DNA of 64,000 nt from Octopus sinensis. Its lineage: Eukaryota. The DNA is taken from assembly GCF_006345805.1 (NCBI RefSeq), contig NC_042997.1, positions 11,036,001 to 11,100,000 of the forward strand, read 5' to 3'. Shown piece after piece: positions 10,028 to 64,000 of the stretch (position 1 is the stretch's first letter; the number at the start of each line of letters is the position of its first letter). The notes under the pieces are model-generated. The model had not been told where the DNA came from. It was given only the letters and a program-made list of their open reading frames with translations, and ran no database searches. Position numbers and translations under genes: made by a program.

Positions 10028-11340
10028 AGTGTAAGCTATGGACACATAAGAGGTGCAGCAATGTCAAAGGTAGGCTAACTGGGAAGATAGTTTTTGTATG
10101 TGGCAGATGCTCGGGAGCATTGACCTCCGAAAATCTGCAGAAAATAACTTCCGTCACTTTCCAGGGAGAAAAACTAGAAGTAGTTGATAGCTTCCGTTAT
10201 CTAGGTGACCAAGTCAGTAGTGCGGGTGGGTGCGCTGAAAGTGTAACTGCTAGAATAAGAATAGCCTGGGCAAAGTTTAGGGAGCTCTTACCTCTGCTGG
10301 TGACTAAAGGCCTCTCGCTCAGAGTAAAAGGCAGACTGTATGATGCATGTGTACGAACAGCCATGCTACATGGCAGTGAAACATGGGCCGTGACTGCTGA
10401 GGACATGCATAAGCTCGTGAGGAATGAAGCCAGTATGCTCCGATGGATGTGTAATGTCAGTGTACATACTCGACAGAGCGTTAGTACCTTGAGAGAAATG
10501 TTGTACCTAAGAAGCATCAGTTGTGGTGTGCAAGAGAGACGATTGCGCTGGTATGGTCATGTGGCGAGAATGGATGAAGACAGGTGTGTGAGAAAGTGCC
10601 AATCCCTAGCAGTTGAGGGAACCCGTGGAAGAGGTAGACCCAGGAAAACCTGGGACGAGGTGGTGAAGCACGACCTTCAAACATTAGGTCTCACCATGGA
10701 AATGACTAGAGACCGAGACCTATGGAAGTATGCTGTGCGTGAGAAGACCCGACAAGACTAGTGAAGCCATAACCCGTGGCCCCTACCTGGGACGTAGTCA
10801 GTCCACTTGTGCATACCTTCCTCCTTGTGACACTTGTGAAGACCTGTTGAGGCAAGTGAAAATCAAAATCAAATCAAATCAAACCAAATAAAAATAGATG
10901 AACATCAATGGAATTTGTATCCTTGTGGGTGGCACATAAGAAAACCATCCGAACGTGATCGTAGCCAGTACCGCATCGACTGGCCTCCGTGCTGTGGGCA
11001 CGTAACAAACAACATCCGAGCGTGGCCGTTCGCCAGCCTCGTCTGGCACCTAAGAAAACACCATCCGAGTGTGGCCGTCTGCCACTTGTGTCGGTGGCAC
11101 ATAAAAACACCATCCGAGCATGGCCGTCTGCCAGCCTCGTCTGGCACCTGTGTCGGTGGCACATAAAATCACCCACTACACTCTCAGAGTGGTTGGCGTT
11201 AGGAAGGCATCCAGCTGTAGAAACACTGCCAGATCTGACTGGCCTGGTGCAGCCTTCGAGCTTGCCAGACCCCAGTTGAACCGTCCAACCCATGCTAGCA
11301 TGGAAAGCGGACGTTAAACGATGATGATGATGATGATGAT
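10028..11340 (+). mobile_element. RTE-clade LINE 3' end with long 3' UTR (about 60-bp tandem units, conserved core, (GAT)n tail)
   Basis: ORF 10120-10761: VDSFRYLG, ARIRIAWAKFREL, AMLHGSETW, RRLRWYGHVARM, GTRGRGRPRKTW; then tandem units, the core TGGTTGGCGTTAGGAAGGCATCCAGCTGTAGAAA and (GAT)n. Confidence 0.9.
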
Positions 11341-23066: not shown

Positions 23067-23606
23067 AACTAACCAGTTCCTTGTGAGAGAATTCGGTCGA
23101 TGGAAACTGTGTAGAAGCCCTGTGTGTCTGTGTCTACGCCACTTGACAACTGGTGTGGGTCTACTTATGTCTTTTTAGACGTTCGGTAAAGGAGTCAATT
23201 GAAAAAGTACCAGACTTGAAACAATAAGTAATGCGGTGTATTTGTTCGCATTAAACCCCAGCACGGCCACAGTCCACTGACTGAAAGAAGTAAAATAATA
23301 TTTTGGTCCCTTATTCCGTTCACCTATGGACACAATAATCCCACCTCTAACACAGAATTAAGGGTTCGTGTTTGAGCAAGACAGTCACTGACTGTAGACG
23401 TCCCTAAAACAATTAAATCTGAAAATACCATACTGTAAATGAACGACTAAATAAGTCCAGCTTATTTGTTGTACTTTAATCACTTTGAACAAGGCGATGG
23501 AGTGTAGGCGAGATGATTACAAAACAACTTGACAGGGAAAACATGAGACTTGTTTTCATTTTTTATTGATTGTTTATATGAAATCTAATTAATAATTCAA
23601 CACAAT

Positions 23607-23856
23607 AATAGCTATTTGTATATATGCATATACGCATATATGTATGCATGTGTGTATATATATATATATATATACATATATATATGTATGCTTGTGTGTA
23701 TATATATATGTATGCTTGTATATATATACAAGCATACATATATATATACACACAAGCATACATATATATATATATATAACACACAAGCATACATATATAT
23801 ATATACACACAAGCATACATATATATATACACACAAGCATATATATATATACACAA

Positions 23857-23913
<57 letters not shown>

Positions 23914-23983
23914 ATATATATACACATATATATATACACATGCATACATATATGCGTATATGCATATATACAAACAGCTATTA
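23607..23983. repeat. TA-rich foldback with mirrored CACAAGCATAC units
   Basis: About 55-bp complex ends are reverse complements; the interior is (TA)n with units in both orientations. Confidence 0.8.
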
Positions 23984-23990
23984 TGTACAC

Positions 23991-24191
23991 CAGTGGTTTT
24001 CAACCAGGGTTCCACCAGTACAGTCCAGGGGTTCCGCAAGAAGTTACAAAACTGCTAAAATCGGCAGTAATTTTTAATTCTCTTGTGCTGATATGTGTGC
24101 ATAAGACTATTAAATTATTGCACAGGGGTTCCTCGAGCCAGTGGAATGTTTCCTTGGGGTTCCGCTCCAGCAAAAAGTTTGAAAAGCACTG
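23991..24191. mobile_element. hAT (Charlie-like) MITE
   Basis: TIR CAGTG(G/C)TTTTCAA; 8-bp flanks ATGTACAC/ATATACAC. Confidence 0.8.
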
Positions 24192-24674
24192 ATATACACA
24201 CATACATATACAGATATATATACATACATGCATATACACAAATATATACACACACATAAATATATATACACAAACACACACATATATATATACCTGCAGG
24301 CTTCTGTGCTTAAGATGTAGTAAGTTGAATATACAATACTTTCTAATCAAATATTATTACATACACATACACACAGGCATACGTGCATAAAATATATACA
24401 ACATAATATACACACATATGCACATCTATACGCGCACAAATGCATACATGTATACACATATGTGAATGTAAGCGCGCACACATTTTTCATTTATACACAC
24501 GCGTGTATGAGTGTAAGAAAGAGAAAGGGATAATACATCGATGAGTTAATAAAAACAAACATTTAGAAAAGAAATTGAAGTTTGGAAGATGTCGCAATCA
24601 AAACACGTAAGGCGAAGTCAAATGAATTGTTTTCGTTTTTTTTAATTTAAATGTAGAAAAATTAAAAAACCTAC

Positions 24675-33246: not shown

Positions 33247-35370
33247 TACAAAAGTTGCCTCAACCAATTCCTCCAGGACCATTGTGAGTCGAACAACATT
33301 GTGACTAATGAACAGGCTGGTGGAAAGGAGGGAGTGTGGGGATGTGCCGAACAACTTTTAATAAACAAAGCTGTACTGTCTGAAGAAAACAGCATAGAAA
33401 CCTTATGACAGTATGGCTTGACTATAAGGATGCATTCGACACTGTCCCTCATTCGTGGCTGTTGAACTGCCTACATCTGGCAAAAGTACCTACCACCCTA
33501 ATTGCTGCTATAGAGAGACTCACAAAGACATGGACAACAATTCTCACCCTTCCAACTGAGAACAGAATAATTGTCTCAGATGCTATAGCCATTTTAAAGG
33601 GAATATTCCAGAGAGATAGTCTTTCTGTACTTCTTTTCATTTTGGCACTGAATCCATCATCATTCCTACTGCAGAAAACAAATGGTTACATGTTAGGACC
33701 TTCAACTGCTAGAAATATCAATGTAACTCATAATTTCTTTGTAGACAACTGCAAGATTTATGCTGAAAGTGTCAACAATGCCAAAAAAAAAAAACAACTG
33801 GAATTTTCAGATGATATAGGTATGGAATTTGGCCAAAAGAAATGTTCGTATTTGGTTATAGAGTGAGGGACGTTAGTCCCCCAAACCCAATGCCTGTGCA
33901 TCAATGGTCTCTCTATCTCCCCCATTCCACACAAAGAATGTTACAAGTATCTAGGCACATACGAAAATGTATCATATGAAGGCACTGTGAATAAAGATAG
34001 AGTGATCTGAGAATATTACACCAGATTTAGGAAAATATGACAGTCAGAACTCTCCTCTTACAACAAAATGATATCCCACAATGCATTTGCAGTACCAGTG
34101 CTGATCCCAACATTTAGGATACTTGATTGGTCTGTAGAGGAAATCCATTCCATAGATATCAAAACCCGCAAAATCCTGACAACAACTGGGAACTTCCACA
34201 GAAACAGTGATGTTGACAGGCTCACCCTAAGGGAAAATGAAGGTGATAGAGGCCTGAGATCAGTGCAGACGGCTTTCAAATGCCGTATGGTATCACTCAA
34301 GCAGTACCTGCTGAACAACAGCAACAAAAATAAATATATTAATGCAGTCCTGAAAAGTGAAGTGAGCAACATTACACAAGTTGGCAGTGAGCTCCTCAAG
34401 AAGCACTCTCTTCCTGATGATCTCCTATACAGCTCCAAAACAGCTGGGCTCTCTTACCTGATAGAAAACCTGGGTGGAAAGCATTCAGCATGCAAAAAAA
34501 TAGACTATGCATGGATATGTTGCCTGGAAGCTTGAAGAAGACAGTAGAATTGCCATGAAGCACAGCCTCTCTTGACACAAGACCACTACATCACATCACA
34601 CTTTGAAGGTTATGCATTTGCAATCCAGGAAAAGGAGACTGCCACAAAATACCTGGTGAACAAGCAAGACAGTGATGAACTTGCAATCTCAAGGTGCAAC
34701 TGCATGTGTAGGCTATGTCATGTTTCTGTGGAAGACATCATGCATGTGATTAGCAGCTGTCTTAAAATGTCGTCACAGTACTACCTCCCTATGTGGCATG
34801 ATGTTGTTGCTAAAACAATTTACAATGCCATCCACAGAAAAGACTACCTTGAAATAAACTTAGAAAATCTCTCTTATGGAATACATTCATAAACACCAAC
34901 TCAAGGAATACTGGTGGAATATTCCCATCAAAACTTCTGTGAAATGTTAACATAACAGGCAGGATATTGTTGTTTGGGATGGATGGGCAAAGGTATGTAT
35001 GTCATAAAGGTCAGCTGCCCTGCAGATATAAATATCTCTTCGAAAATCAAAGACAAAGAGGATATCTATGGACAACTGCTTCGAAACCTCTAGCTTCTAT
35101 ATCCAGAATATGAATTCATATTCATACCAATAATAATTGGGATACTAGGTTTTGTTAGTAAATGCTTAACGGAGAATCTGGATAAACTTGAATTTTCAGA
35201 AAGAGCAACTAACCATTTAATGCATACATTACACATGCAATCTGTCAGTGGAACAGTAAAAATATGCAAGACTTTTCTTAAGTTCCAAATGTGTCTGTGT
35301 TAACTACATCCCAAAGACAGAGCCTTGTATCTTTTTAGGAAACCGACTCCCTCCTCAGTGGAAGATGAGA
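33247..35370 (+). mobile_element. 5'-truncated, degraded Dong/R4-type LINE of a second subfamily
   Basis: EQAGGKEGVWGCAEQLLINK, WLDYKDAFDTVPH, GIFQRDSLS, FFVDNCKIY, YKYLG, CRLC...HVISSC...WHDVVAK, IPIIIGILG; ends at a CA/CATA microsatellite. Confidence 0.85.
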
Positions 35371-42969: not shown

Positions 42970-45900
42970 TTTCCTTCTTTCTTCAAATTTTCTTCCGTTT
43001 CTCGCCAAGTGTTTTCTGTACACCTAGGGCAGAGAAGCTCATTGTATGCATTCCCAGATTACACATGCAAATTCACAGTAAAATATGTATTTAAAAATTA
43101 ATAAATAAATAAATTCATGGATGGATGTTGTTTTCACAACGACAATACTCTTCTCAGTACATGTGTCATTCCAGTTAACATGACTTTCTGCACTTCTTGT
43201 AGGGATGGTAAGCCTGGTATCATTTTCAAATAGGTTTCAGTACCTTTTTTTATTATTCCTAGAGATCCTACAATCACTGGTACTGTAGTCGCCTTGAGAT
43301 GCCACATTTTTTCAATTTCTATTAGCAAGTCTTTATACTTACTGATCTTGTCAAATTATTTCGCCGCTATATTGTGATCGCAAGGAATACTCATGTCAAT
43401 TAATAAACACATCCTTTTTGTCTGATCTTTTATAATAATATCCGGTTTATTAGCTTTTATAGTTTTGTCGGTATGTATGGGGAAGTCCCATAGAATCGAC
43501 ACATTTTCTCCCTCAGTCACAGCTTCAGGATGGTGTTTATACCATTTCTCAGTGGTTTTGATTTTATAATGCCGACATATTGTCCAGTGTAAATACTGGC
43601 CGACTCTGTCATGTCTTGCTTTATATTCTACAGGTGCTAAAACTCTACACCCTGAGATTAGGTGGTCTATAGTTCAATCTCATTGTTACAGAATCGGCAT
43701 TTTGGGTCAGCTCCATTTTTTATCACATTGGCTTGGTAGTTCCGGGTTGATAAGCATTGGTTTTGAGCAGCTTCACTCTCTGCTTTTAGCCCTGAGCTTC
43801 GTAACCATTTGTGCGTGTGTTTCTGGTCGACATCAGCTTGTTTGCTATGGGCCACATACTTGCCATGCAGAGGTTTCTGTTCCCATCTGCTAGCTAATTT
43901 TTCGTGTGCTTTTGTCTTTGCAATCAATTTTATTTTCTTTGCAGCAGCAGTTGGCACATTTCTTTCAGCCTGATCAATTTGGTAGGTATCTAAGAGATCA
44001 GTGGCGAATTTTTTGCTCTCTTTCAGAATAGAGTGAAGTTTTTTCGGTCTTTCATGTTTTTCAACAAGTTTTAGCATCCAATTGTTGGTTGCTTCAAGGT
44101 ATTTGGCCAGCCCGATTGTAGTGCTTTTGTACAAACTGGATCAAATCTCGTCCTCCCTGAGCTCTGGGAAGGTAAAGACAATCCACGACTGCCTTTGGAT
44201 GGTGCATCTTATTACAAGTCAGTAGCTTGCGGATTTTTCTGTCAATTTTCATTATTTCACTGGTATTCCAGTTAAGCACATTGAAGCTATAAAGAACAAC
44301 TGGGACTGCTAAGGAATTTATGGCTAACACCTTATTATATGCATTCAGCTCAGACTTCAGGATTGCTCGAACTCTTCTATAACATTCCTTCCTTACCTTC
44401 TCTTTCATGCTTGCATGCTGGATACCAGAGCCTTCATTTATTCCTAGGTATTTATAGGTTTGTTCCTGCTCAAGTTTCTTTATTACTGTTTCGACATCTA
44501 ATTTGATTGAACTTGACTTTACTAATTTCCCTTTCTTAAAAGAGGCTTTGGCACACTTTTCAAGGCCAAACTCCGTCCCGATATCATCACTGAATCCTTT
44601 CACAGTATGTAAGAGTCTGTCAAGCTCTTCATCATCTTTGCCATATAGTTTTAAGTCATCCATATAAAATAGATGGCTTATTTTCCTGTTGTCAATTTTG
44701 TAGTCATACCCTGTTCTATTCAGTTCACTTGCGAGTGGTATTAGTGCTATGCAGAAAATTAGTGGTGAAAGTGAGTCACCTTGGAAAATACCACAGTTTA
44801 TGCTAATATTGTTTGAGCGCAATACTCCATTATGGTATAATTGGAGCTTCGTGTTCCATAGTAACATATTATACTTTAAAAAATCTGAAATCACAGGAGA
44901 AATTTTGAAAATGTCCAGCGATTTCAGAATCCACGAATGTGGTATGCTGTCAAAGGCTTTTTTGTAATCAATCCAAGAAGAGCTGAGATTTCTGCGCTTG
45001 TTATGACAGTTCTCAAGGATCATGCGATTAATTAGGAGCTGATGTTTACATTCGTATGAACCTCGTCTGCATCCTTTTTGTTCAGTGAGAAAGAGGTTAT
45101 TCTCTTCCATAAACGTATATGTTTTCTCCACTAGAATAGGTGTCAAATTCTTATAGGTAGTAGACAAACATGTTATAGGCCGGTAGTTTTTTTGATCTTT
45201 TGTTTCATTATTTTTGGGGAGGAGGTAAGTAATACCATTTGCCATCCAATGGCGAGTTTTTTCCGGGTCTTTCATAATACTATTAAATAGTATTACTAAC
45301 ATTTTGTGTGCGGACGAGAGTGATGAGAACCAGAAATTTGGTACTCTGTCAATACCAGGGGATTTCCACTTATGAGCCTTCGTTAGTGCCCTCCTTAGGT
45401 TGATGATTGAGATGTCTTCCCATACCTGTTCTTGTAGATTTTTGTAGGTGTCTTGGATGCGTTTGATCCAGTTTGCATTTTCACTGTATGGTTTCTCATC
45501 ACTCCATCCTCTTTCCAAAAGTTTTCAACTTCTTCCATTAGGGGTGGATTTTCAATAGTTATTTTTTCTTTCCCTATTTCCCTGTATAATGATTTGGCAT
45601 TGGATTTGAACATCTTATTTTGCTTGTAGCATTTAATTCTTTTCTCAAATCTGCATATTCTCTGAGCTTTTGCTTGAACTTTTTGTTTGTTTCTTTCGCT
45701 GAGATTAGGTCTTCTCTTGTTGAGAGTCCATGTTTTCTCGCAATCTTCCTGCCTTTTCTTGATCTTACACCATTTCCAGAGATTAGCTCAGTTAATATTG
45801 ATATCTCCTTTTGCGATGATTCAATTTCAGTTTCAATTCTACCCCTCCAGTTTGATTTTCTTTTTGAATTTGGTACTGTTGGCTTTTTGGGCATTAAACA

Positions 45901-46538
45901 GCATCTTTCGATTACCTTAGCAACGGAGTAAATAATTTCATTTAACTTATTAAGATCGGGTTTTAGTTGTTGTATGATTTCTTGTGTAACGCAGTTGCCA
46001 ATTTTTATTTGTGTTTTATGTTGGTGTGCATTTGAGAGTTTATGGAGTGGTTCCCTATCATTCATAGTTGTATGCCCTACAACTGCAAGCTCATTCAGAA
46101 CTTCCTGCTTCATTTCAATGATAGACTTTCTGTATTGTTCAGCGAATATGTGGTCTTCAAATTCTGTTTCGACATCATTTTCCGGGCTGTTTTTTCTAGG
46201 GTCATTATATTTTCTTCTTCTTCAGGATCTTGAGTCTTTTCGGCAGATGTTCGCCTTTCAGTCAATGCTTGCAGTCCAACATTCCTCCCCTCTGCTTCGT
46301 TATTTCCTTCCTGACTTACATTTAGGTCATTCTCTACCACTGCATCTGTGGGTCTGATATTTCTGAAGATATCTCTTCTAACATTTGCTAATCTGTTTTC
46401 ATCCGGGTTTGGTCTGCTAGCTGGATTCCGGCTCCTCCAAATTCTGTAGGAGTTTGCGGTGTGTTTCTCTTGGGTTGGCCTACTTAATGCAAAGTAATAA
46501 GCATATATTACTTCTTTATATTCTTCCTGATTCCATTT
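42969..46538 (-). mobile_element. Near-full-length Dong/R4-clade non-LTR retrotransposon (RT plus restriction-like endonuclease), frameshifted
   Basis: Consecutive minus ORFs: N-terminus KWNQEEYKEVIYAYY...RNP...ENRLANVRRDI; RT motifs KSPGID, NYRPITCL, WIDYKKAFDSIPH, GIFQGDSLSPL, LFYMDDLKLY, YKYLG; CRFC...HLISGC zinc finger; RHD; KPDIII...LIDMSIP endonuclease. Several frameshifts and one in-frame stop; (TAA)n on both sides. Confidence 0.92.
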
Positions 46539-46565
46539 ATTATTATTATCATTATTATTATTATT

Positions 46566-46850
46566 ATTCTGTTGTGTCTGAGGAAAGTCATTTTCTTTTT
46601 GTGCCTTATAATATAACACACTCAATGGTAAAATTTCCACTTTTTTCTTATTTTTATTGTCCTAAAGAGTCAAAACTATTGAAAAGGTTGCAAGATGCAG
46701 CAAAAATTTTAGGACAATAAAAATAAGAAAAAATTGGAAATTTTACCGGTGAGTGTGTTTTATTATAAGGCACAAAAAGAAAATGACTCTCCCCAGACAC
46801 AACAGAATATGCTTCAACACACGAACTCATATAAAGAATCTTGCAAACCA
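46566..46850. mobile_element. Family A foldback: inverted arm 46566-46666 plus direct copy 46676-46850 with decayed hammerhead
   Basis: About 100-bp arms (46566-46666 vs 46708-46808). The 41-bp spacer holds CTA-TTGAAAA-G-GTTGC-AAGAT-GCAGC-AAAA. Confidence 0.8.
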
Positions 46851-48771: not shown

Positions 48772-48777
48772 TTTATT
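48772..48777 (-). terminator. Candidate polyadenylation signal of alpha-tubulin
   Basis: AATAAA on the minus strand about 75 nt after the stop codon. Confidence 0.45.
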
Positions 48778-48852: not shown

Positions 48853-49985
48853 TTAATATTCTTCTAGTTCTTCTTCTTCAGGATAAATATCTTCTGTATC
48901 AAATCCAACTTCTTCATAATCTTTTTCCAATGAAGCCAGATCTTCTCTTGCTTCTGAAAATTCTCCTTCTTCCATACCTTCACCAACATACCAATGAACA
49001 AATGCACGTTTAGCATACATGAGGTCAAACTTAAAATCTAGCCTGGCCCAAGCTTCAGCAATGGCTGTTGTGTTACTTAAAAGACACACTGCTCGTGGTA
49101 CTTGAGCCAAATCTCCACCAGGCACTGCTGTTGGTGGTTGATAATTGATACCAACTTTATATCCAGTTGGACACCAGTCAACAAATTGTATAGACCTTTT
49201 GGTTTTAATTGTAGCAATAGCCGCATTGACATCTTTTGGTACTACGTCTCCACGATATAACATGCAACAAGCCATGTATTTTCCATGACGTGGATCACAT
49301 TTAACCATCTGGTTAGATGGCTCAAAGCATGCATTGGCAATCTCTGAAACTGTCAACTGTTCGTGATTAGCTTTCTCAACAGATAAGATTGGAGCATAAG
49401 TTACCAATGGAAAGTGAATTCTTGGATAAGGTACAAGGTTGGTTTGGAATTCAGTTAAATCTACATTAAGGGCTCCATCGAACCGTAATGAGGCTGTGAT
49501 GGAACTGACTACTTGAGCAATCAATCGGTTTAGATTGGTATAGCTTGGACGATCAATGTCTAAATTACGCCTACATATATCATAGATGGCTTCATTGTCA
49601 ACCATAAATGAACAATCGGAATGTTCTAGTGTAGTATGAGTTGTCAGAATAGAGTTATATGGCTCAACAACAGCAGTAGCAATTTGTGGAGCTGGGTAAA
49701 TGGAAAATTCTAATTTAGATTTCTTACCATAATCTACGCTGAGACGTTCCATTAATAAAGAAGTAAAACCACTACCAGTGCCACCACCAAAGCTATGGAA
49801 AATCAAAAATCCTTGCAGACCATTACATTGGTCGGTCAGTTTGCGAATCCTCTCTAATACTGAATCCACAATTTCTTTACCAATCGTATAATGTCCTCTG
49901 GCATAGTTGTTAGCAGCATCTTCCTTTCCTGTTATCAATTGCTCAGGATGAAATAAGTGGGAATACTTGCCAGTTCGGACTTCAT
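48853..49985 (-). CDS. TUBA: Alpha-tubulin, last coding exon (codons 76-452 plus stop)
   Basis: Translation [33 protein letters not shown]...GGGTGSG...[19 protein letters not shown]...EEELEEY* is colinear with alpha-tubulin. Acceptor ttttcacag| at 49986-49987; phase 1 joins the G of the upstream exon to give GAT (Asp76). Confidence 0.97.
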
Positions 49986-50159
49986 CTGTGAAAATAAAAT
50001 AAAATAAAATAGTAGTTTCAAAAGTCATTTCATGGGTTTCTCCCACTTCTGCTTCCCCTTAGTCTCCCTTTCTCCTCAATCACCCACCCTCTCTTTCTGA
50101 CACATTTTCACTCTCATGATATGAATGGTGCATTGTCTATGAACCTAAGCTTATGAATA

Positions 50160-50330
50160 TATGTATGTAAGCATGTGGAAAAGGGAGACCCAGGAAGACA
50201 TAGGACAAAGCATTGAAGGCTGATCACAAGACGTTGAGCCTTACAGAAGAGGTGACAAAGACAGAGATGATTGACATTTTGCTGTGCTCAAGAAGACCTG
50301 TCCATTACAATAAAAATGATATCCTAAAAC
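50160..50330 (+). mobile_element. RTE LINE 3' fragment in tubulin intron 2
   Basis: Matches the GRPRKTW-encoding end of the RTE ORF and the following gaagacctgt motif. Confidence 0.6.
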
Positions 50331-51459
50331 CACTTGGTTATTCTAGTACATGCAAGACCCTGTCCCCACTCCTCTCTCTCTTCTCTCTAACACATCAAAC
50401 ACCCCACCAGCACTACCACCACCACTATCACCATTTTCATCCCTCTTATATCATTGGTAATACTTGGCTGTTGTACTTACTTGAGAGCAGAATTGGCACA
50501 CGTATTACAGCCAATCCTCTGTAATGGTCGGCCCCACACCCCCAGAACCACTTCTATACTTTCAACCACTGCTCTCCCCCTCTCTCTCTCCTTCTCTCCC
50601 TCTCTCCTTCTCTCCCTCTCTCCTTCTCTCTCTCCTTCTCTCTCTTTCTCTCTCTCTCTCTCTGTGTCTCTGTCTGTCTGTGTGTGTCTCTCACTCTCTC
50701 TGCTATACTCTATTCTAAACAACTCTTGTCTGCTATCATTCTCAATGCCCCTCCCCCATATCTACCATCTTATGTATCCCTATATCTTCCACTCCACTAC
50801 TTCTACACCTCTCACATCATCCCACTATATTCTGCTCTATCCTTCTTCCTGAGTTACTCCTATGCCTCCCAAATTACACCTCTACATACTTGTGTTTCCC
50901 ATCATCTGCACCCTCACCCTTGTTCATAATTTACTACATTAATCTCGACCTCCAACTGTTTACTCTTCTCTCACTCTCACACATTAACAAAAGCTTCCAT
51001 TCTCTCATCCTCTCCCATGACCCACTCACCATGTCCTCTTTTATGCTCACCTTGTTCCTTGACAATTTGCTGTAACATCCCATCACTATCTTCCTTTTAT
51101 CTCCTTAAGCCATGCATCTCCTCTATAGCAAGATGCTTGTGCTTCTCCCTCTATCATACTTTAGCCTTTCAGCATCTGGCATAAAGCCACCCACCTCCAC
51201 CTTCCCCTCCCAAATCCTTCATCTTAAGAGTAGGAGCTTTTTTCCATTTCCTTTTTCTCTCTTCTTTTCTGTCTTATAGGTTACATGACAATCCCATTAG
51301 TGTTGTTGACACAAAATTTTAAAAAAGCACCCAGTACACCCTGTAAAGTGGTTGGCATAACATTGGAACTTGATGCAGCCTGTAGCTCTCAAATAGTGAG
51401 AGTCAAATCATCCAATGCATGCTAGCATGGAAAGTGGGCATTAAATGATGATGTTGTTG

Positions 51460-51557
51460 ATGGTGGTGGTGGTGGCAGTGGTGGTGGTGGTGGTGGTGGT
51501 GGTGGTGGTGGTGGTTGTGGCGGTGGTGGTGGCAGCGGTGGTGGTGGTGGTGGTGGT
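51460..51557 (+). repeat. (GGT)n microsatellite
   Basis: About 30 near-pure GGT units in tubulin intron 2. Confidence 0.95.
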
Positions 51558-53638
51558 GATGATGATGATGAAATATGCTTTACATGCATGAATATATCTA
51601 TTTTGCCAATTGTAAATTACTAATGATTACCACAAGGCTTTTGATTCCTTTCTCCTACTACAAGTAGAAATTTCAATTCAGTAAGCATTTTTGCATGACA
51701 TTCAGCATATTAACACCTACATGATGTATCTTTATCCATGCCATTGGTTTATCCAAGTCATTTCCTTTAGCTCAATTGTAATTATTATTATGAAAATTAC
51801 TTCTGGCCAAAAGTCTTCATAACACTTTTTCTCTATGTAAAAACTATTGTCTTTTGATCATGCAGCTTCATACTGGCTGTGTTCTGCTGATGAGGTGCAA
51901 TAAGACTGAAACATTTCATGTCATTACTGCCCCTGCTAACAACAATCAGATTATCTCTAACGCACGAGGATTAAATTTCTCAGAATGAATTCTAAATATT
52001 CTTGAAACTATGTTTCCTTATGTGTCATAAGCAATTGTAGCCTGATTTGTTTTCAATCTCCAACTAAGACAGAAATTTCAATTCATTAAGAATTGTTCAT
52101 GTACGTCATTCAGTATTCCAACATTCACATGATTTGTTGGCAGAGCAAAAAGCTGGCCTCCGTTCCAATGGAACGTAAAAAACACCATTCAAGCGTGATC
52201 GTTACCTGCATCGCCTTACTGGCACTTGTGCCAGTGGCATGTGAAAAAACATTCGAGCGAGGTCATTGCCAGTGCCACTGGACTGGCTCCTGTGCAGGTG
52301 GCACATAAAAAGCACCATTTGAGCGTGGCCGTTGCCAGTACCACCTGACTGGCCCTCGTGCCAGTGGCACGTAAAAACACCCACTACACTCTCGGAGTGG
52401 TTGGCGTTAGGAAGGGCATCCAGCTGTAGAAACTCTGCCAGATCAGATTGGAGTCTGTTGCAACCATCTGGTTCACCAGACCTCAGTCAAATCATCCAAC
52501 TCATGCTAAGCATGGAAAGCGGATGTTAAACGATGATGATGATATACATGTCACAACTTGTTATGGCATACAGTTTGTCTTGTATGACTCTTATTTGTAC
52601 ATAAGATGTTGGAACTGCTCAAAGGACTTGATAATTGGTGAAAATTTATATTTTCTTGAATAAAACAAACTATCTGAAACTTTGAGATCTATTCTGGAAA
52701 TACAGTTTTACTTAATGGTTAGAATTGTTTTAAAACTGTAAAAACTCTTTGATGAATATATAAAATAAGACAGAATAATAAATATAGTTTGATTCACCAG
52801 CATGATGCAGCATACTCCAAACTTTGACCGCATTGACATATTGTTTCACTCTGCTCTTCAGAACTAGATGGTCTCTAACCATGTGCACCCTGGTCCACCC
52901 AGGTCCACTAGACTTATTATTGACATTTGTCTCTCCTCTTTACATCACTCATATTGCATTTATTCTCTGTGCCTTACAACAGATGCTCCAAACTTTCTTT
53001 TCAGAGTGTCATCCTCTGAAATATACATCATTTGCATCAACTTTACTGGTTTTAGATGGTCTTCAAAGGCCATGTACCTGCTTCTTCCCCCAGACCAAAT
53101 CATTGCAAAAAAAGTAAAAATTCGATTTTCTGTTCCATTGTGCCTTTGATTTCATGTAGGAAAAGGCAACCAGTAGCCATACTAATGTATCTTCTCAATA
53201 GACTACACTATTGTAAGAAAGAAGAGGCAGCCAGTATCAACCAGTTCTGTACATAAATATCTGTTTATGTTTCATTATAAACTTATAAAGCACATGTATG
53301 GCTAAGTTGACAGAACACCAGACAATCAGCTGAAAGACTGACATTTCATGTCCTACACCTGTGTTGTGGCTTCAAACAAAACATTCAACTCTCAAGTAGC
53401 CCAGTCTACTTAGTTTCACTAAACGACAGTGTAAACACTGGAAAACTCATAAGAGCTTTATTAGTTTGTAGTGCAAAATTCAACACTGTCTATGGGTATG
53501 GGAGTACAGCTTGAAAAAAAAGGCATGCTCTGCTAAGCTGATTTGGACATACTACATGAAGATATAGTGTTCAGTGAACTATTAGGTTATGAGATTCACT
53601 GTGTAACTTTATAGAGTGGAACCCAGTTACAAAGAAAG

Positions 53639-53677
<39 letters not shown>

Positions 53678-54234
53678 GTTAGGAAGGGCATCCAGCTGTA
53701 GAAACATTGCCAGATAAGACTGGAGCCTGGTGCAGCCTTCTGGCTTCCCAGATCCCCGGTCGAACCGTCCAACCCATGCTAGCATGGAGAACGGACGTTA
53801 AACGATGATGATGATGATGATGATATATGATGATATATATATATATATATACTGAACAAATCGCCCCCGAAATTTGGGGGGAGGGGGCCAGTCAATTAGA
53901 TCGACCCCAGTATGCAACTGGTACTTTATTGACCCCGAAAGGATGAAAGGCAAAGTTGACCTTGACGGAATTTGAACTCAGGATGTAAAGACAGACAAAA
54001 TACTGCTAAGCATTTTGCTCGGTGTGCTAACATTTCTGCCAGCTTACCGCCTTCTCATTCAAGTCACATTGCTAGGTAGAGTACAGTTGACAATAAATTA
54101 GGTCAGTATCTGATGCTATGAAAGTAGGGTAAAGGAAGAAGCTGAGGAGTTGGAAAAGGACAAGGAGGAGAAAGTAGTGACGATAATGAAAATGTTAATG
54201 ATGACATGGCCATAGCAATGAGAAGATGCTGCAG

Positions 54235-54271
<37 letters not shown>

Positions 54272-54305
54272 TTATAATAATAATAACAACAACAATAATA
54301 ATAAC

Positions 54306-54858
54306 TGCCCTGATGCAGTACCAGGCAGTGGCTCTCATGGCTCCTGATCTTAACTGATTGGAAGTGTTACCATGTATATTGTTTTGTCTTGGTATAAAAG
54401 ATGGGCTAGAGCAAATATTCTGTTCAATACCACAGATTTGCTTGTCAGTTGTTTGACCGTAACCAGTTGAGCATGTCCCTTAGTGGCTGACAACATGTGC
54501 ATCTCTGATCACGACCAGAAGTAGTGGGGGAGCATCATAGCCGTGTGTTGAGAGGGATTCTTTTGGGTTTGAATAATTCACCTCTGGAAACACGGGTGAT
54601 TCGTTCATCATCCTTAAACAACCCTTATTCGGGGACATTTTGAGCGGGATGGATTACTCGACCAGAAGATTATTCTAACTGGGCCCTACCTGCAAGGTCA
54701 TGTGCTGTTTATCTTGATATGAGATCACCATGTCGTGCACATATGGTCGTGATGCATGTGCCTGGTGTACCTTTATCAGACGGGTAGTCATGATGGGTAT
54801 ATTGGGCTTCATATATTTTACCTCAGTGTCACTTTGATGGCATGTACTGCTCTCTCAC
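54306..54858. mobile_element. Unclassified 553-bp element lying between two (TAA)n tracts in tubulin intron 2
   Basis: More GC/CpG-rich than its flanks, sharply bounded by (TAA)n at about 54234-54305 and 54859-54897; no recognisable ORF. Confidence 0.5.
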
Positions 54859-54924
54859 ATAATAATAATAATAATATAATAATAATAATAATAATAAAGG
54901 GACAGAACAAAGACCAATACTTAC

Positions 54925-55147
54925 CAATTACAGTAGGTTCCAAATCTATGAATATGGCACGAGGTACATGCATTTTTTTCTCTGTTTCACAAAAGAAAGT
55001 GTTACAAGAGTCATCTGTATTCTCAGCATTTTGTTCTTCAGACTTTTTCCCATCAGGTTCAATCCCGTGCTCCAGACAATACAACTCCCAGCATGAGTTG
55101 CCCATTTGCACACCAGCCTGTCCAACATGGATGCTGATACATTCTCG
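54925..55147 (-). CDS. TUBA: Alpha-tubulin, internal coding exon (codons 2-76)
   Basis: [33 protein letters not shown]...[15 protein letters not shown]; acceptor ttttctag|CGA and donor G|gtaagt; 223 nt. With an ATG exon and the last exon: 3+223+1133=1359 nt = 452 aa plus stop. Introns after codon 1 and within codon 76 match known conserved alpha-tubulin positions. Confidence 0.97.
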
Positions 55148-55259
55148 CTAGAAAATGAAACGACAAAAATTATAATTTAAGAACATGAAATGGAAGATAT
55201 TCTAGTTTAAGTATACTTTCAATTTAAGTACATTAGTTTCATGTCCCTTACAGGATTAC

Positions 55260-55262: not shown

Positions 55263-56685
55263 ATAATTTTGTTTGATTATTCACTGGTGGCTAGCAATAA
55301 TGAATAATGGTAATACAAAATTGAATGTAAATGTACGTAGAATTACCATATCTCAACAGACACTGCATTTATTATTTGATTTATCTTTTATCGTTTATCT
55401 GTTTCAATCATTAGGCTGTGGCCATGCTGGGGCACTGCCTCGAAGAACTTTTACCTGAATGACTTAATCCCAAAACTTTCTTTTTTTTTTTTAGCCTGGT
55501 ACTTATTCTCATTTTGCCCAACCACTAAGTTATGGGGATATAAACTTACCAACACTGGTTGTCAAGCGGTGGTGAGAGACAAACACAGAAACAAAGACAC
55601 ACACACATATATAGGACAAGCTTCTTTCAGTTTCTGTCTACTAAATCCACTTACAAGGCTTTGGTTAGCCCGGTCTGGGAATCGAAACCGCGATTCTACA
55701 ACTGCGAGTCTGCTGTCCTAACCATCGGACCATTGCGCCTCCACACTTTTGCTAGAAATAAAAGCAATAAATCTATTGCTGGCAGATTCAGAGACATTAT
55801 CTCTTTTTAGTATATGACTGACTGTTGCATATTTCTATAGATTGGAATAGATGTCCATAAACATAAAAATGCTGAAGCAAGAAGCCATACCAGGTTCCAT
55901 AGTCTGTTTTGGCATGGTTTCTACAGCTGGATGCCCTTCTTAATGCCAGCCACTATACAGAGTGTGCTGATTGTTTTTATGTGGCACTAGCACCAGTGCT
56001 TTTTTTACATGGCACCATCACCAGTGCTTTCTTCTTGGCACCAGCACTGACAACACCCCCCTCAACAGGCAGTGGGAAGTAGTATTGAGGGAGCATGGCT
56101 TTGTGCCTATTGAGAGATTTAAGGTACAGAGGGAACAGATATAGGTGACTTGCTGCAGAGTAGATACATGGCTATCCCAGTTTCAAAACACAGAGTCCAT
56201 GAATAGAGACCTTGGAAACATCCTTTGTTTCCTTCAACAGCATGACTTACACTTGAACAACAAAACTAAACCCTTCAAACTTGCTCCAAATTCTAGGCTT
56301 CACAACCTCTGAAGATTTCTGATAGCAAAACTACATCCAAAACTAGTATTCCACTATAAAGCCTGGAAATAATTCAGCTCTGATCAGTTGCCAACTCTCA
56401 GCAAAGCTTACATTCAACCTTAGAATTATAGAGTATTACTTAAATATCTGGGGAAGTCCAGCTACACCTCTTCTCTACATAAATATCTAGTAATTATATA
56501 TTTAATGTTAATATCTGAAATGATCTGATCAAAATGTTTCCAATGAATTATTAAAGCAACTAAACCAGGCTTCCAGACATGTGATTTCTCTGTCTCACTT
56601 TTACACACACTTGTGTGTGTGTATGTGTATATATATGTGTGCATACACATACACACACTCACACACACAAACACACATATATATA

Positions 56686-57067: not shown

Positions 57068-59205
57068 TATATATATATATACATACACACATGTGCAAGT
57101 GTATGTGTATATATGTATATGTATATATATATATAGTCTCTCTCTCTTTACTCTTTTACTCGTTTCAGTCATTTGACTGCGGCGATGCTTGAGCACCGCC
57201 TTTAGTCAAGCAACTCGACCCCGGGACTTATTCTTTGTAAGCCTAGTACTTATTCTATCGGTCTCTTTTGCCGAACCGCTAAGTGACGGGGACGTAAACA
57301 CACCAGCATCGGTTGTCAAGCAATTCTAGGGGGACAAACACGGACACACACATACATATATATATACATATATACGACAGGCTTCTTTCAGTTTCCGCCT
57401 ACCAAATCCACTCACAAGGCATTGGTCGGCCCGGGGCTATAGCAGAAGACACTTGCCCAAGATGCCACGCAGTGGGACTGAACCCGGAACCATGTGGTTG
57501 GTTTGCAAGCTACTTACCACACAGCCACTCCTGCACCTATTAATGTTTGTTTTTATGTAAAGTTATATAAAAAAAAGACAATTGAACTTTAAATTTAAGG
57601 ACTACTAGATACTTTTTAGAAGAGTGTCATATTCATTAATTGACAGTGAACCCAAGGTTTTGGCTTGCAAGCTGTCAATAGAGTGTCGGGTAGTGGCTAG
57701 GAAACTTTCAACAGTTTGCACCTTCATCTTGTACTGTTGGAGCATCAGTTTGTATATCCATAGCTTTCTGCAGCCAATACCAATGCTGATGAAGATTATT
57801 CTCCATTGCTTTCCTCCATCTTTTGTAAAAAGCTTCAATGGTTAGCTTAAATCCTGAGACAAGAGCTGCAAGCACAGAGGTTGCAATGAAAGTAAGAAAC
57901 AGTTTAAAAAAGAACTGACATGACACTTATGAATGTCCATGCTTATACATTGCTTTTGTATTCTTGAACATTTGTAATTTTTATTCCTTTTCCTTCCACC
58001 CTGCTCTTTTTTCTTCTTCTTTTTTTAACTTTTGTTATTTTCTTTTGTTTCTTTTTGTATCTTTGTGTTTACCTATATCTTTATTTTTTGTTGTTGTTTA
58101 ATTTTGGTACACGTCAAATTCTTCAGTTTCATTTTTTCCCTCTTTAATGTTTTAATGCCCCAAACTTTTCTATTATCGCACTTCTGCTACACAATGGCTT
58201 GGCTGGATGTTGCATTGACAGTCTGTCGAAGGGGAGGAAAAACAAAGTAAAATTAATTAAAAAGTTTTGAGCCATGGAGTGGCGCAGGAGTGGCTGTGTG
58301 GTAAGTAGCTTGCTAACCAACCACATGGTTCCGGGTTCAGTCCCACTGCATGGCATCTTGGACAAGTGTCTTCTGCTATAGCCCCAGGCCGACCAATGCC
58401 TTGTGAGTGAATTTGGTAGATGGAAACTGAAAAAAGCCTGTCGTATATATGTATATATATATATGTATGTGTGTGTGTGTGTGTTTGTGTGTCTGTGTTT
58501 GTCCCCCTGGCATTGCTTGACAACCGATGCTGGTGTGTTTACGTCCCCGTCACTTAGCGGTTCGGCAAAAGAGACCGATAGAATAAGTACTAGGCTTCCA
58601 AAGAATAAGTCCCGGGGTCGATTTGCTCGACTAAAGGCAGTGCTCCAGCAAATGACTGAAACAAGTAAAAGAGTAAAAGAGTAAAGAGTATGTGACGAGT
58701 AACCAGGAGACCAACATGGTTAAACAATTTTGTCACACCCTACCAGCTTTTGTCCTCTCGCTTCCTACCTCCTCCATCACATTCTAGGGAAGTTAATTCG
58801 CATCCCCCCCCCTATTTCTCCCCAACCCCTTCCACCATCAGATTCGGCTGGTATTAGGCCTGATCATCCCTTTATTCACCCTACAACTCCCATAATAGCC
58901 AGTCTACCGCCATCACCTCCTGCACCCCCAGCCAAACCCCACTGCCAGTATTAACACTCTTCATCCAGCTTTCCTCTCTACCTCCATCACTAACCTTCCC
59001 CACCTCCCCTTATTCATCCCAACACTCCTGTTATAGCTAGCCTGCCTGCATCACCTCCTGCACCCCAATCGAATCCCACCACCAGAGTTAATGTTGTTCA
59101 CTCAGCTACCCCCTCTACCGCCAGTCCCATCCTTCCCCCCCCCCCTCACCATCTGATCCTAATTCTAATGCTGACCCCAATGATAGTGCCATTTCATCTC
59201 CAAGC

Positions 59206-63309: not shown

Positions 63310-64000
63310 GTTTAGGGCAACAAACCCAGAGATTATAAACAAAGAGATGACTTCGTAGTTTGTATGATTGTTCAATTATTTCAAGTCATAGGGGAGAGAG
63401 AACAGCTACACATCAATTTAGAGAAAAGAAATGAAATTTTGACAGCATTATTAAATATGAATGATTAACAAACAAATGAATAAATTGCTAATTACATTCG
63501 CTCTCTGGGGAATATGTTTTAACAGATATATTGGAAAATATGATCATTCATTACATAGCAGAGTAAAACTATAGGCTGAATTTTAGAAAATACATTCTAA
63601 AATAAGTTCGATATTAGTGAAAAGATAAAAGATTCGGGAATGGGGAAAATGAATCGAAAGAAGAGAGAAATGAAGAGAAGATAGGAAAAGAAGGTGGTGG
63701 TGGGGGTCAAGTATAACAATACTGAGAGGGAAAGAGAGACAGACAGAGAAATAGAAACAAAGACAGAGAGAGTGAGAGAGACATGCGAATATGCAGACAG
63801 AGAGAGAAAGTGACATACAGAGAGCGAGAGAGAGAAGAGGAGGAACTGCAAGGAAAAGGAGCATTGAGCACCCATTGGTTAATTTCTGGCTGACGTAATA
63901 GACAATGCGGTTTTAGCAGACGATGAACGAAGGTTAAGATCAGTAAAATAACTGAACATTTGGCAACAGCGTTTAAGTAATCTTTCCAACACCTTGCTTC

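Follow-up and report, generated by a model that had tools for sequence, protein, structure and literature searches.

A divergent alpha-tubulin isotype of Octopus sinensis with a rewritten H1-S2 loop, in which Lys40 is absent and Gln40 looks incidental

Is a glutamine at position 40 of an alpha-tubulin a natural counterpart of acetylated Lys40, or one of many changes in a loop that has been rewritten as a whole? The question is raised by a tubulin gene of Octopus sinensis on contig NC_042997.1, which we analysed within a stretch of 64,000 nucleotides (positions 11,036,001 to 11,100,000), in the following called the window. All coordinates refer to this window. The region at issue is encoded on the minus strand, in the second exon of the gene:

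55016..55048, minus strand: codons 35-45, the rewritten core of the H1-S2 ('K40') loop, which faces the lumen
54971..55048, minus strand: full remodelled H1-S2 part, residues 35-60

The reverse complement of 55016..55048 reads AAAAAGTCTGAAGAACAAAATGCTGAGAATACA and encodes residues 35-45, with codon 40 being CAA (Gln) at 55033..55031. As reference, the majority consensus of the 28 other full-length alpha-tubulins retrieved was used, which has QMPSDKTIGGG at residues 35-45. A gapless alignment revealed that 11/11 residues of this segment differ from the consensus, compared to 43/425 in the remaining core (Fisher p = 4e-11 for the excess in the loop). The divergence is strongly localised to the loop and is not a matter of chance. 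We could reproduce the original prediction in this respect, including the replacement of QMPSDKTIGGG without an indel and the CAA codon at 55033-55031, and its residue numbering is correct. The remodelling continues beyond residue 45 with F49C, S54C, G57E, A58K, G59K and K60M; changes are found in the C-terminal tail too. The K40-acetylatable class is characterised by Lys40 in the consensus PSDKT; here Gln40 is found and the flanking SDKTIGGG is wholly replaced. An origin of the new loop by a compensated frameshift was rejected, since the other two frames of the loop DNA encode no peptide resembling QMPSDK, neither in this gene nor in that of P0086, the closest relative described below. Within the remodelled part, Cys49 and Cys54 flank the residues NTFF (SCNTFFCE; 54980-55006, minus strand), and both are kept in P0086. 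Cys49 occurs in 0/43 other alpha-tubulins, Cys54 also in TUBA4A-like proteins. This luminal cysteine pair may be a redox or metal site.

The gene to which the loop belongs is composed in the window of the following elements:

55147..54925, minus strand: coding exon 2, 223 nt, codons 2-75 and the first base of codon 76
49986..54924, minus strand: intron 2, 4939 nt, phase 1, gtaagt...tcacag
49985..48853, minus strand: last coding exon, codons 76-452 uninterrupted (377 codons), followed by the stop codon TAA at 48855..48853
48856..48903, minus strand: isotype-specific C-terminal tail, residues 437-452
48772..48777, minus strand: AATAAA polyadenylation signal, beginning 75 nt past the stop codon

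Exon 2 is bordered by canonical splice sites on both sides (acceptor ttctag/CGAGAA, donor ATTG/gtaagt) and opens from 55147 with the codons CGA GAA TGT, corresponding to R2, E3 and C4. An in-frame TAG (55150..55148) stands directly before it at the acceptor, so that the ATG must be supplied by the end of a further exon upstream. In the classic layout of animal alpha-tubulin genes, exon 1 comprises the 5′-UTR and the ATG, and exon 2 has a length of 223 nt. With the initiating methionine assumed from such an exon 1, the start of exon 2 matches the alpha-specific N-terminus MRECI, and the product, counting this methionine, has 452 amino acids. The last coding exon holds the GGGTGSG motif, E254 and the Tubulin_C domain. 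Throughout the coding sequence of 1359 nt neither stop codons nor frameshifts are present. A tblastn search of the 64 kb detected these two tubulin exons only, that is a single tubulin gene without a tandem duplicate, and a retrocopy origin is excluded by the presence of introns. The local RNA fold of exon 2 is unremarkable (z = +1.0), and a duplex in this exon serving as editing substrate was rejected on this ground.

As judged from its sequence, the gene product has kept what characterises an alpha-tubulin. PF00091 (Tubulin) matches residues 3-213 with 210.6 bits (cut-off 33, 3e-62) and PF03953 (Tubulin_C) residues 263-392 with 171.5 bits (cut-off 26.6, 1e-50). Among solved structures, 69 distinct alpha-tubulin sequences were matched at E <= 1e-150, the best with 916 bits over residues 1-448, and the identity to these proteins is about 85%. 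The nucleotide-site and catalytic residues G10, Q11, A12, D69, E71, D98, N101 and S140 agree with the consensus of 28, and the same holds for G143-G146, T179, E183, N206, Y224, N228, D251, E254 and K394. Glu254 of alpha-tubulin activates GTP hydrolysis in the adjacent beta subunit. The acidic tail ends in EEEELEEY and has retained the terminal tyrosine; unlike usual tails, it is free of glycine. An AlphaFold2 model built on an alignment of 30 sequences was too low in confidence for use (mean pLDDT 37.5). The gene is structurally intact, and there is no sign of a loss of function in its sequence.

Outside the tubulin gene the window abounds in repeats, among them microsatellites, SINE-like copies and ORFs for reverse transcriptase:

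43667-46640, minus strand: LINE-like retroelement remnant with a 474-aa ORF and an RVT_1 domain (44094-45518)
33405-33866, plus strand: retroelement fragment (RVT_1, 3.6e-09)
10120-10761, plus strand: retroelement fragment resembling the C-terminal part of a reverse transcriptase, no Pfam match
23589-24192: TA/TG-rich microsatellite block with spurious ORFs on both strands

Between the tubulin poly(A) signal and the start of the LINE-like remnant downstream of it lie about 2.1 kb. At least three more ORFs, in other frames, border the 474-aa ORF of the remnant, and one of these has a weak match to DUF5891. In intron 2 we found an array of the (GGT)n type, an extended CT-rich tract and (ATT)n runs (51428-51580, about 50450-50900, 54240-54320 and 54860-54900), as well as SINE-like repeats; one (ATT)n run starts about 25 nt past the exon 2 donor. 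Scans of the window for tRNAs and Rfam families delivered no matches. Shortly upstream of exon 2, a stretch resembling a tRNA (55568-55760) received no call by ARAGORN or Rfam and is, by eye, probably the head of a SINE. SINE-like copies are located at 55568-55673 and 57329-57434. Further upstream, an inverted pair (57186-57537 and 58281-58650), 92-93% complementary and about 750-1100 nt apart, belongs to the tubulin gene's 5′ flank or its intron 1 and, if it is transcribed, could fold into an extended RNA duplex.

Relatives of the protein were sought in a database of 5.8 billion proteins with three queries, namely the full length, residues 1-100 and residues 1-266. The full-length query was dominated by fused double-tubulin gene models and residues 1-100 yielded short fragments alone; residues 1-266 were chosen to drop the fused models by length. 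In each informative search a single protein, P0086, was closer than ordinary alpha-tubulins. It shares 91% identity overall with the octopus protein, 93.6% in the core and 90% over residues 1-266, and is followed by canonical proteins of many phyla with 85-87%. The core identity to named taxa is flat (89-91%). A cephalopod orthologue was not found in these searches, and the sole cephalopod alpha-tubulin retrieved, P0111 of Enteroctopus dofleini, is canonical, carries K40 and is 87% identical. P0086 is encoded by a JGI metatranscriptome sequence (L001; 3300018952, contig Ga0192852_10037595) of 1556 nt, which comprises a 5′-UTR of 113 nt, an ORF of 450 amino acids and a 3′-UTR with AATAAA. Being intronless and bearing both untranslated regions, it is a mature mRNA, and it shows that the isotype lineage is expressed somewhere in nature.

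The relationship between the two proteins is visible in residues scattered over the whole length. Fourteen of them are common to the octopus protein and P0086 and missing, or almost so, from 43 other full-length alpha-tubulins: K36, E38, C49, E57, T126, N130, N282, Y351, S427, F437, I442, Y443, P444 and an extra Glu. C54 is likewise common to both proteins, and so is the unusual C-terminal tail. K36, E38, C49, E57, N130, Y351, S427, F437 and the tail occur in at most two of the 43 others each. A set of eight signature motifs was complete in P0086 alone among 349 retrieved proteins, and none of 347 others had two or more of them. At the nucleotide level the synonymous sites of the two coding sequences are saturated (pS 0.865) at an overall pN of 0.057, which points to an old divergence with purifying selection since. 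The sequences indicate that both proteins belong to an isotype lineage of their own, which is old and has been subject to purifying selection, with the reservation that dN/dS averages over a long history and is compatible with a recent loss of function. The lineage has no representation among the named proteins of the collection searched. A collection of 15 billion proteins, transcriptome assemblies included, contained neither the exact octopus protein nor the exon-3 ORF nor any of seven products of alternative gene models or ORFs. A degenerate DNA scan of JGI metagenome contigs for CNTFFCET returned 13 loci, none of which proved to be tubulin by tblastn.

A recent inactivation or missing expression of the octopus gene, for instance by loss of exon 1 or the promoter, would make the odd loop a product of relaxed constraint. 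Exon 1 with the 5′-UTR and the ATG, as well as the promoter, could not be located in the 8.8 kb upstream, where 16 ATG/GT sites are present and none is distinguished from the rest, and where no similarity to the 5′-UTR of the P0086 mRNA was found. Moreover, flanks and introns are packed with SINE and LINE copies, and none of the forms of the protein that were tried occurs in the protein collection. However, alpha-tubulin genes can have a long first intron, and exon 1 may therefore sit past position 64000. The 1359 nt are open, splice sites and poly(A) signal are intact, and every catalytic or nucleotide-contact residue that was checked is conserved. The 14 lineage residues and the tail are shared with the expressed P0086 across saturated synonymous sites, which requires long-term selection. 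On balance we regard such an inactivation as rather unlikely.

A further reading gives more weight to what the two members of the ancient lineage have in common. The loop changes (K36, E38, Cys49 and Cys54 around NTFF, E57) together with the glycine-free tail containing Ile-Tyr-Pro might amount to a novel 'code' of lumen and tail, used in a specialised array of microtubules. Examples could be a redox-sensitive or metal-binding pair of luminal cysteines, a relocated modification site at K36 or dedicated luminal partners. We consider a code of this kind to be unlikely.

Another proposal concerns Gln40 itself. The original prediction regarded it as possibly constitutively acetyl-like, and an adaptive, hard-wired mimic of acetyl-lysine would be independent of ATAT1, weaken lateral contacts and increase the resistance to mechanical damage. 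K40Q is indeed the standard experimental mimic (PMC8987236), CAA is one base away from the Lys codon AAA, and the loop has the same length as the canonical one. However, the sole relative of the lineage argues against selection for glutamine. In P0086 the loop reads HKPEDADQG, which is shorter by two residues and contains no Lys at positions 38-45; the column of Q40 is occupied by a gap (MAFFT, global alignment) or by Ala (ungapped from the N-terminal side), never by Gln. Residues 39-45 differ between the two proteins, as do residues 58-60 (KKM in the octopus protein, NNR in P0086), and only K36, E38, C49, C54 and E57 are held within the loop. Codons 31-62 have a pN of 0.24 in this comparison, about six times the value of 0.041 elsewhere, which makes the loop the part of the protein with the top non-synonymous rate. 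In addition, all ten neighbours of Gln40 are replaced, including D39, T41, I42 and the Gly hinge, and with them the context is gone in which K40Q mimics acetyl-K40. Among 46 full-length alpha-tubulin cluster representatives, K40 is missing in seven, with S, T, L, E or H in its place and no residue being preferred. An acetyl-mimic is therefore, in our view, very unlikely.

With regard to position 40, the absence of Lys40 and with it of the canonical ATAT1 site was borne out by the Gln codon CAA, and it is a trait of the lineage, because P0086 lacks Lys40 as well. The comparison supports a protein that would be non-acetylatable at the canonical site. The statement that K40-less isotypes exist in nature holds for TUBA8 (PMC5384676), for C. 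elegans (PMC8987236) and for 7/46 proteins of our own sample. The constitutively acetyl-like character of Gln40, on the other hand, is not supported in view of the missing Gln, the loop shortened by two residues and the pN of 0.24 versus 0.041 seen with P0086. Variability of position 40 among orthologues, which had been named beforehand as refuting selection for Gln, was observed in one relative, P0086. Concerning the other loop features, the loss of GGG is real, and so is the gain of K36, which is common to P0086; the gain of K35 is real in the octopus protein and is not shared with P0086. With the single relative P0086 as basis, position 40 and its neighbours look weakly constrained and Gln at this position looks incidental.

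A shift of the acetylation site, such that Lys36 or another loop lysine is modified in the lumen, is highly improbable: K36 is present in both proteins of the lineage and in 0/43 other alpha-tubulins, and a similar question has been posed for K42 of TUBA8 (PMC5384676), but ATAT1 is described as acting with high specificity on K40 in the native loop (PMC11039541) and the surroundings of K36 (DG-K/H-K-S/P-E) are unlike SDKT.

We therefore favour, as the likely explanation, a divergent alpha-tubulin isotype of an old lineage, unannotated in the protein sets searched, that has lost Lys40 and acquired a remodelled H1-S2 loop, with Gln40 as a by-product. The glutamine would have arisen in the course of a fast, weakly constrained evolution of residues 39-45. 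Assuming expression in this species, which we infer, one would expect a protein able to fold, to take up GTP at the N-site and to polymerise together with beta-tubulin, since it has kept all residues for catalysis and nucleotide contact as well as the acidic tail with its tyrosine. The resulting dimers would present a lumen-facing loop that ATAT1/MEC-17 could not acetylate at position 40 and that is more acidic and lacks the Gly-rich hinge. Microtubules rich in this isotype would escape acetylation of K40 and presumably its methylation (trimethylation) as well, so that the isotype may dilute or exclude K40-dependent regulation in an array built from it. Terminal tyrosine and Glu run are retained, and detyrosination and glutamylation would remain possible.

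Luminal partners, for instance microtubule inner proteins, would moreover encounter another surface in the altered loop. The K40 loop of doublet microtubules serves inner proteins for docking and turns ordered when a protein such as FAP52 binds via D39, T41 and I42; K40 and D39 have been proposed to form a salt bridge (PMC6994238). Contacts of the FAP52 type should be changed or abolished by the rewritten loop, because they run through these three residues. Antibody 6-11B-1 is known to label octopus tissues (PMC4458049, PMC9712504). K40 acetylation is present in the group, and this staining reflects canonical isotypes.

The closest precedent is TUBA8, in which residues 35-45 are rewritten at unchanged length, K40 is replaced by Ala, a new lysine lies nearby and the tail is divergent (PMC5384676). 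The octopus protein resembles it in the replacement of a peptide of about ten residues at 35-45 at constant length, in the loss of K40 with a lysine nearby and in the divergent tail. However, the loop of mouse TUBA8, TFGTQASKIND, shows no similarity to the loop described here, and TUBA8 ends in Phe, whereas our protein ends in Tyr and should still enter the detyrosination cycle owing to this residue. Neither the TF-x-TQASKIND loop nor the C-terminal Phe that mark TUBA8 orthologues was found. TUBA8 is a parallel case and not an orthologue; the resemblance would be a functional one only, and the tissue specificity of TUBA8 (testis, muscle) is not transferable to the octopus protein.

In C. elegans, K40 is present in MEC-12 alone, one of nine alpha-tubulins (PMC8987236). 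The nematode likewise has functional alpha-tubulins that naturally lack K40 (TBA-1, TBA-2 and the rest) next to one acetylatable isotype. The K40-less forms are the majority there, whereas in our case canonical K40 is the rule among the nearest named taxa, for example in P0111 of Enteroctopus, and the K40-less lineage the exception. With canonical metazoan alpha-1 tubulin (PDB 3j8x, 7rro) the octopus protein shares about 85% identity over the full length, the domains, the nucleotide-site residues and the logic of the tail. It differs in all 11 of 11 loop residues at 35-45, at positions 49, 54 and 57-60, and in a tail with Ile-Tyr-Pro and without Gly. About 10% of its core positions differ, whereas canonical forms are very highly conserved among themselves. 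The best-scoring solved chain, 6tis_A, reads QMPSDRTVGGG and has Arg instead of Lys at position 40.

What is new is the specific lineage only, consisting of the octopus protein and P0086; K40-less isotypes as a kind are already known. The finding reveals no new principle, and the idea of a 'natural acetyl-mimic' is not supported by the sole relative available. If expressed, the gene would give the octopus a genetically encoded means of building microtubules that are unable to take the K40 mark. Mammals, with TUBA8, and nematodes reached the same solution independently, and the lineage adds one more data point for the tubulin code. It also provides a natural loop variant that may be used for probing the role of the K40 loop in the microtubule lumen.
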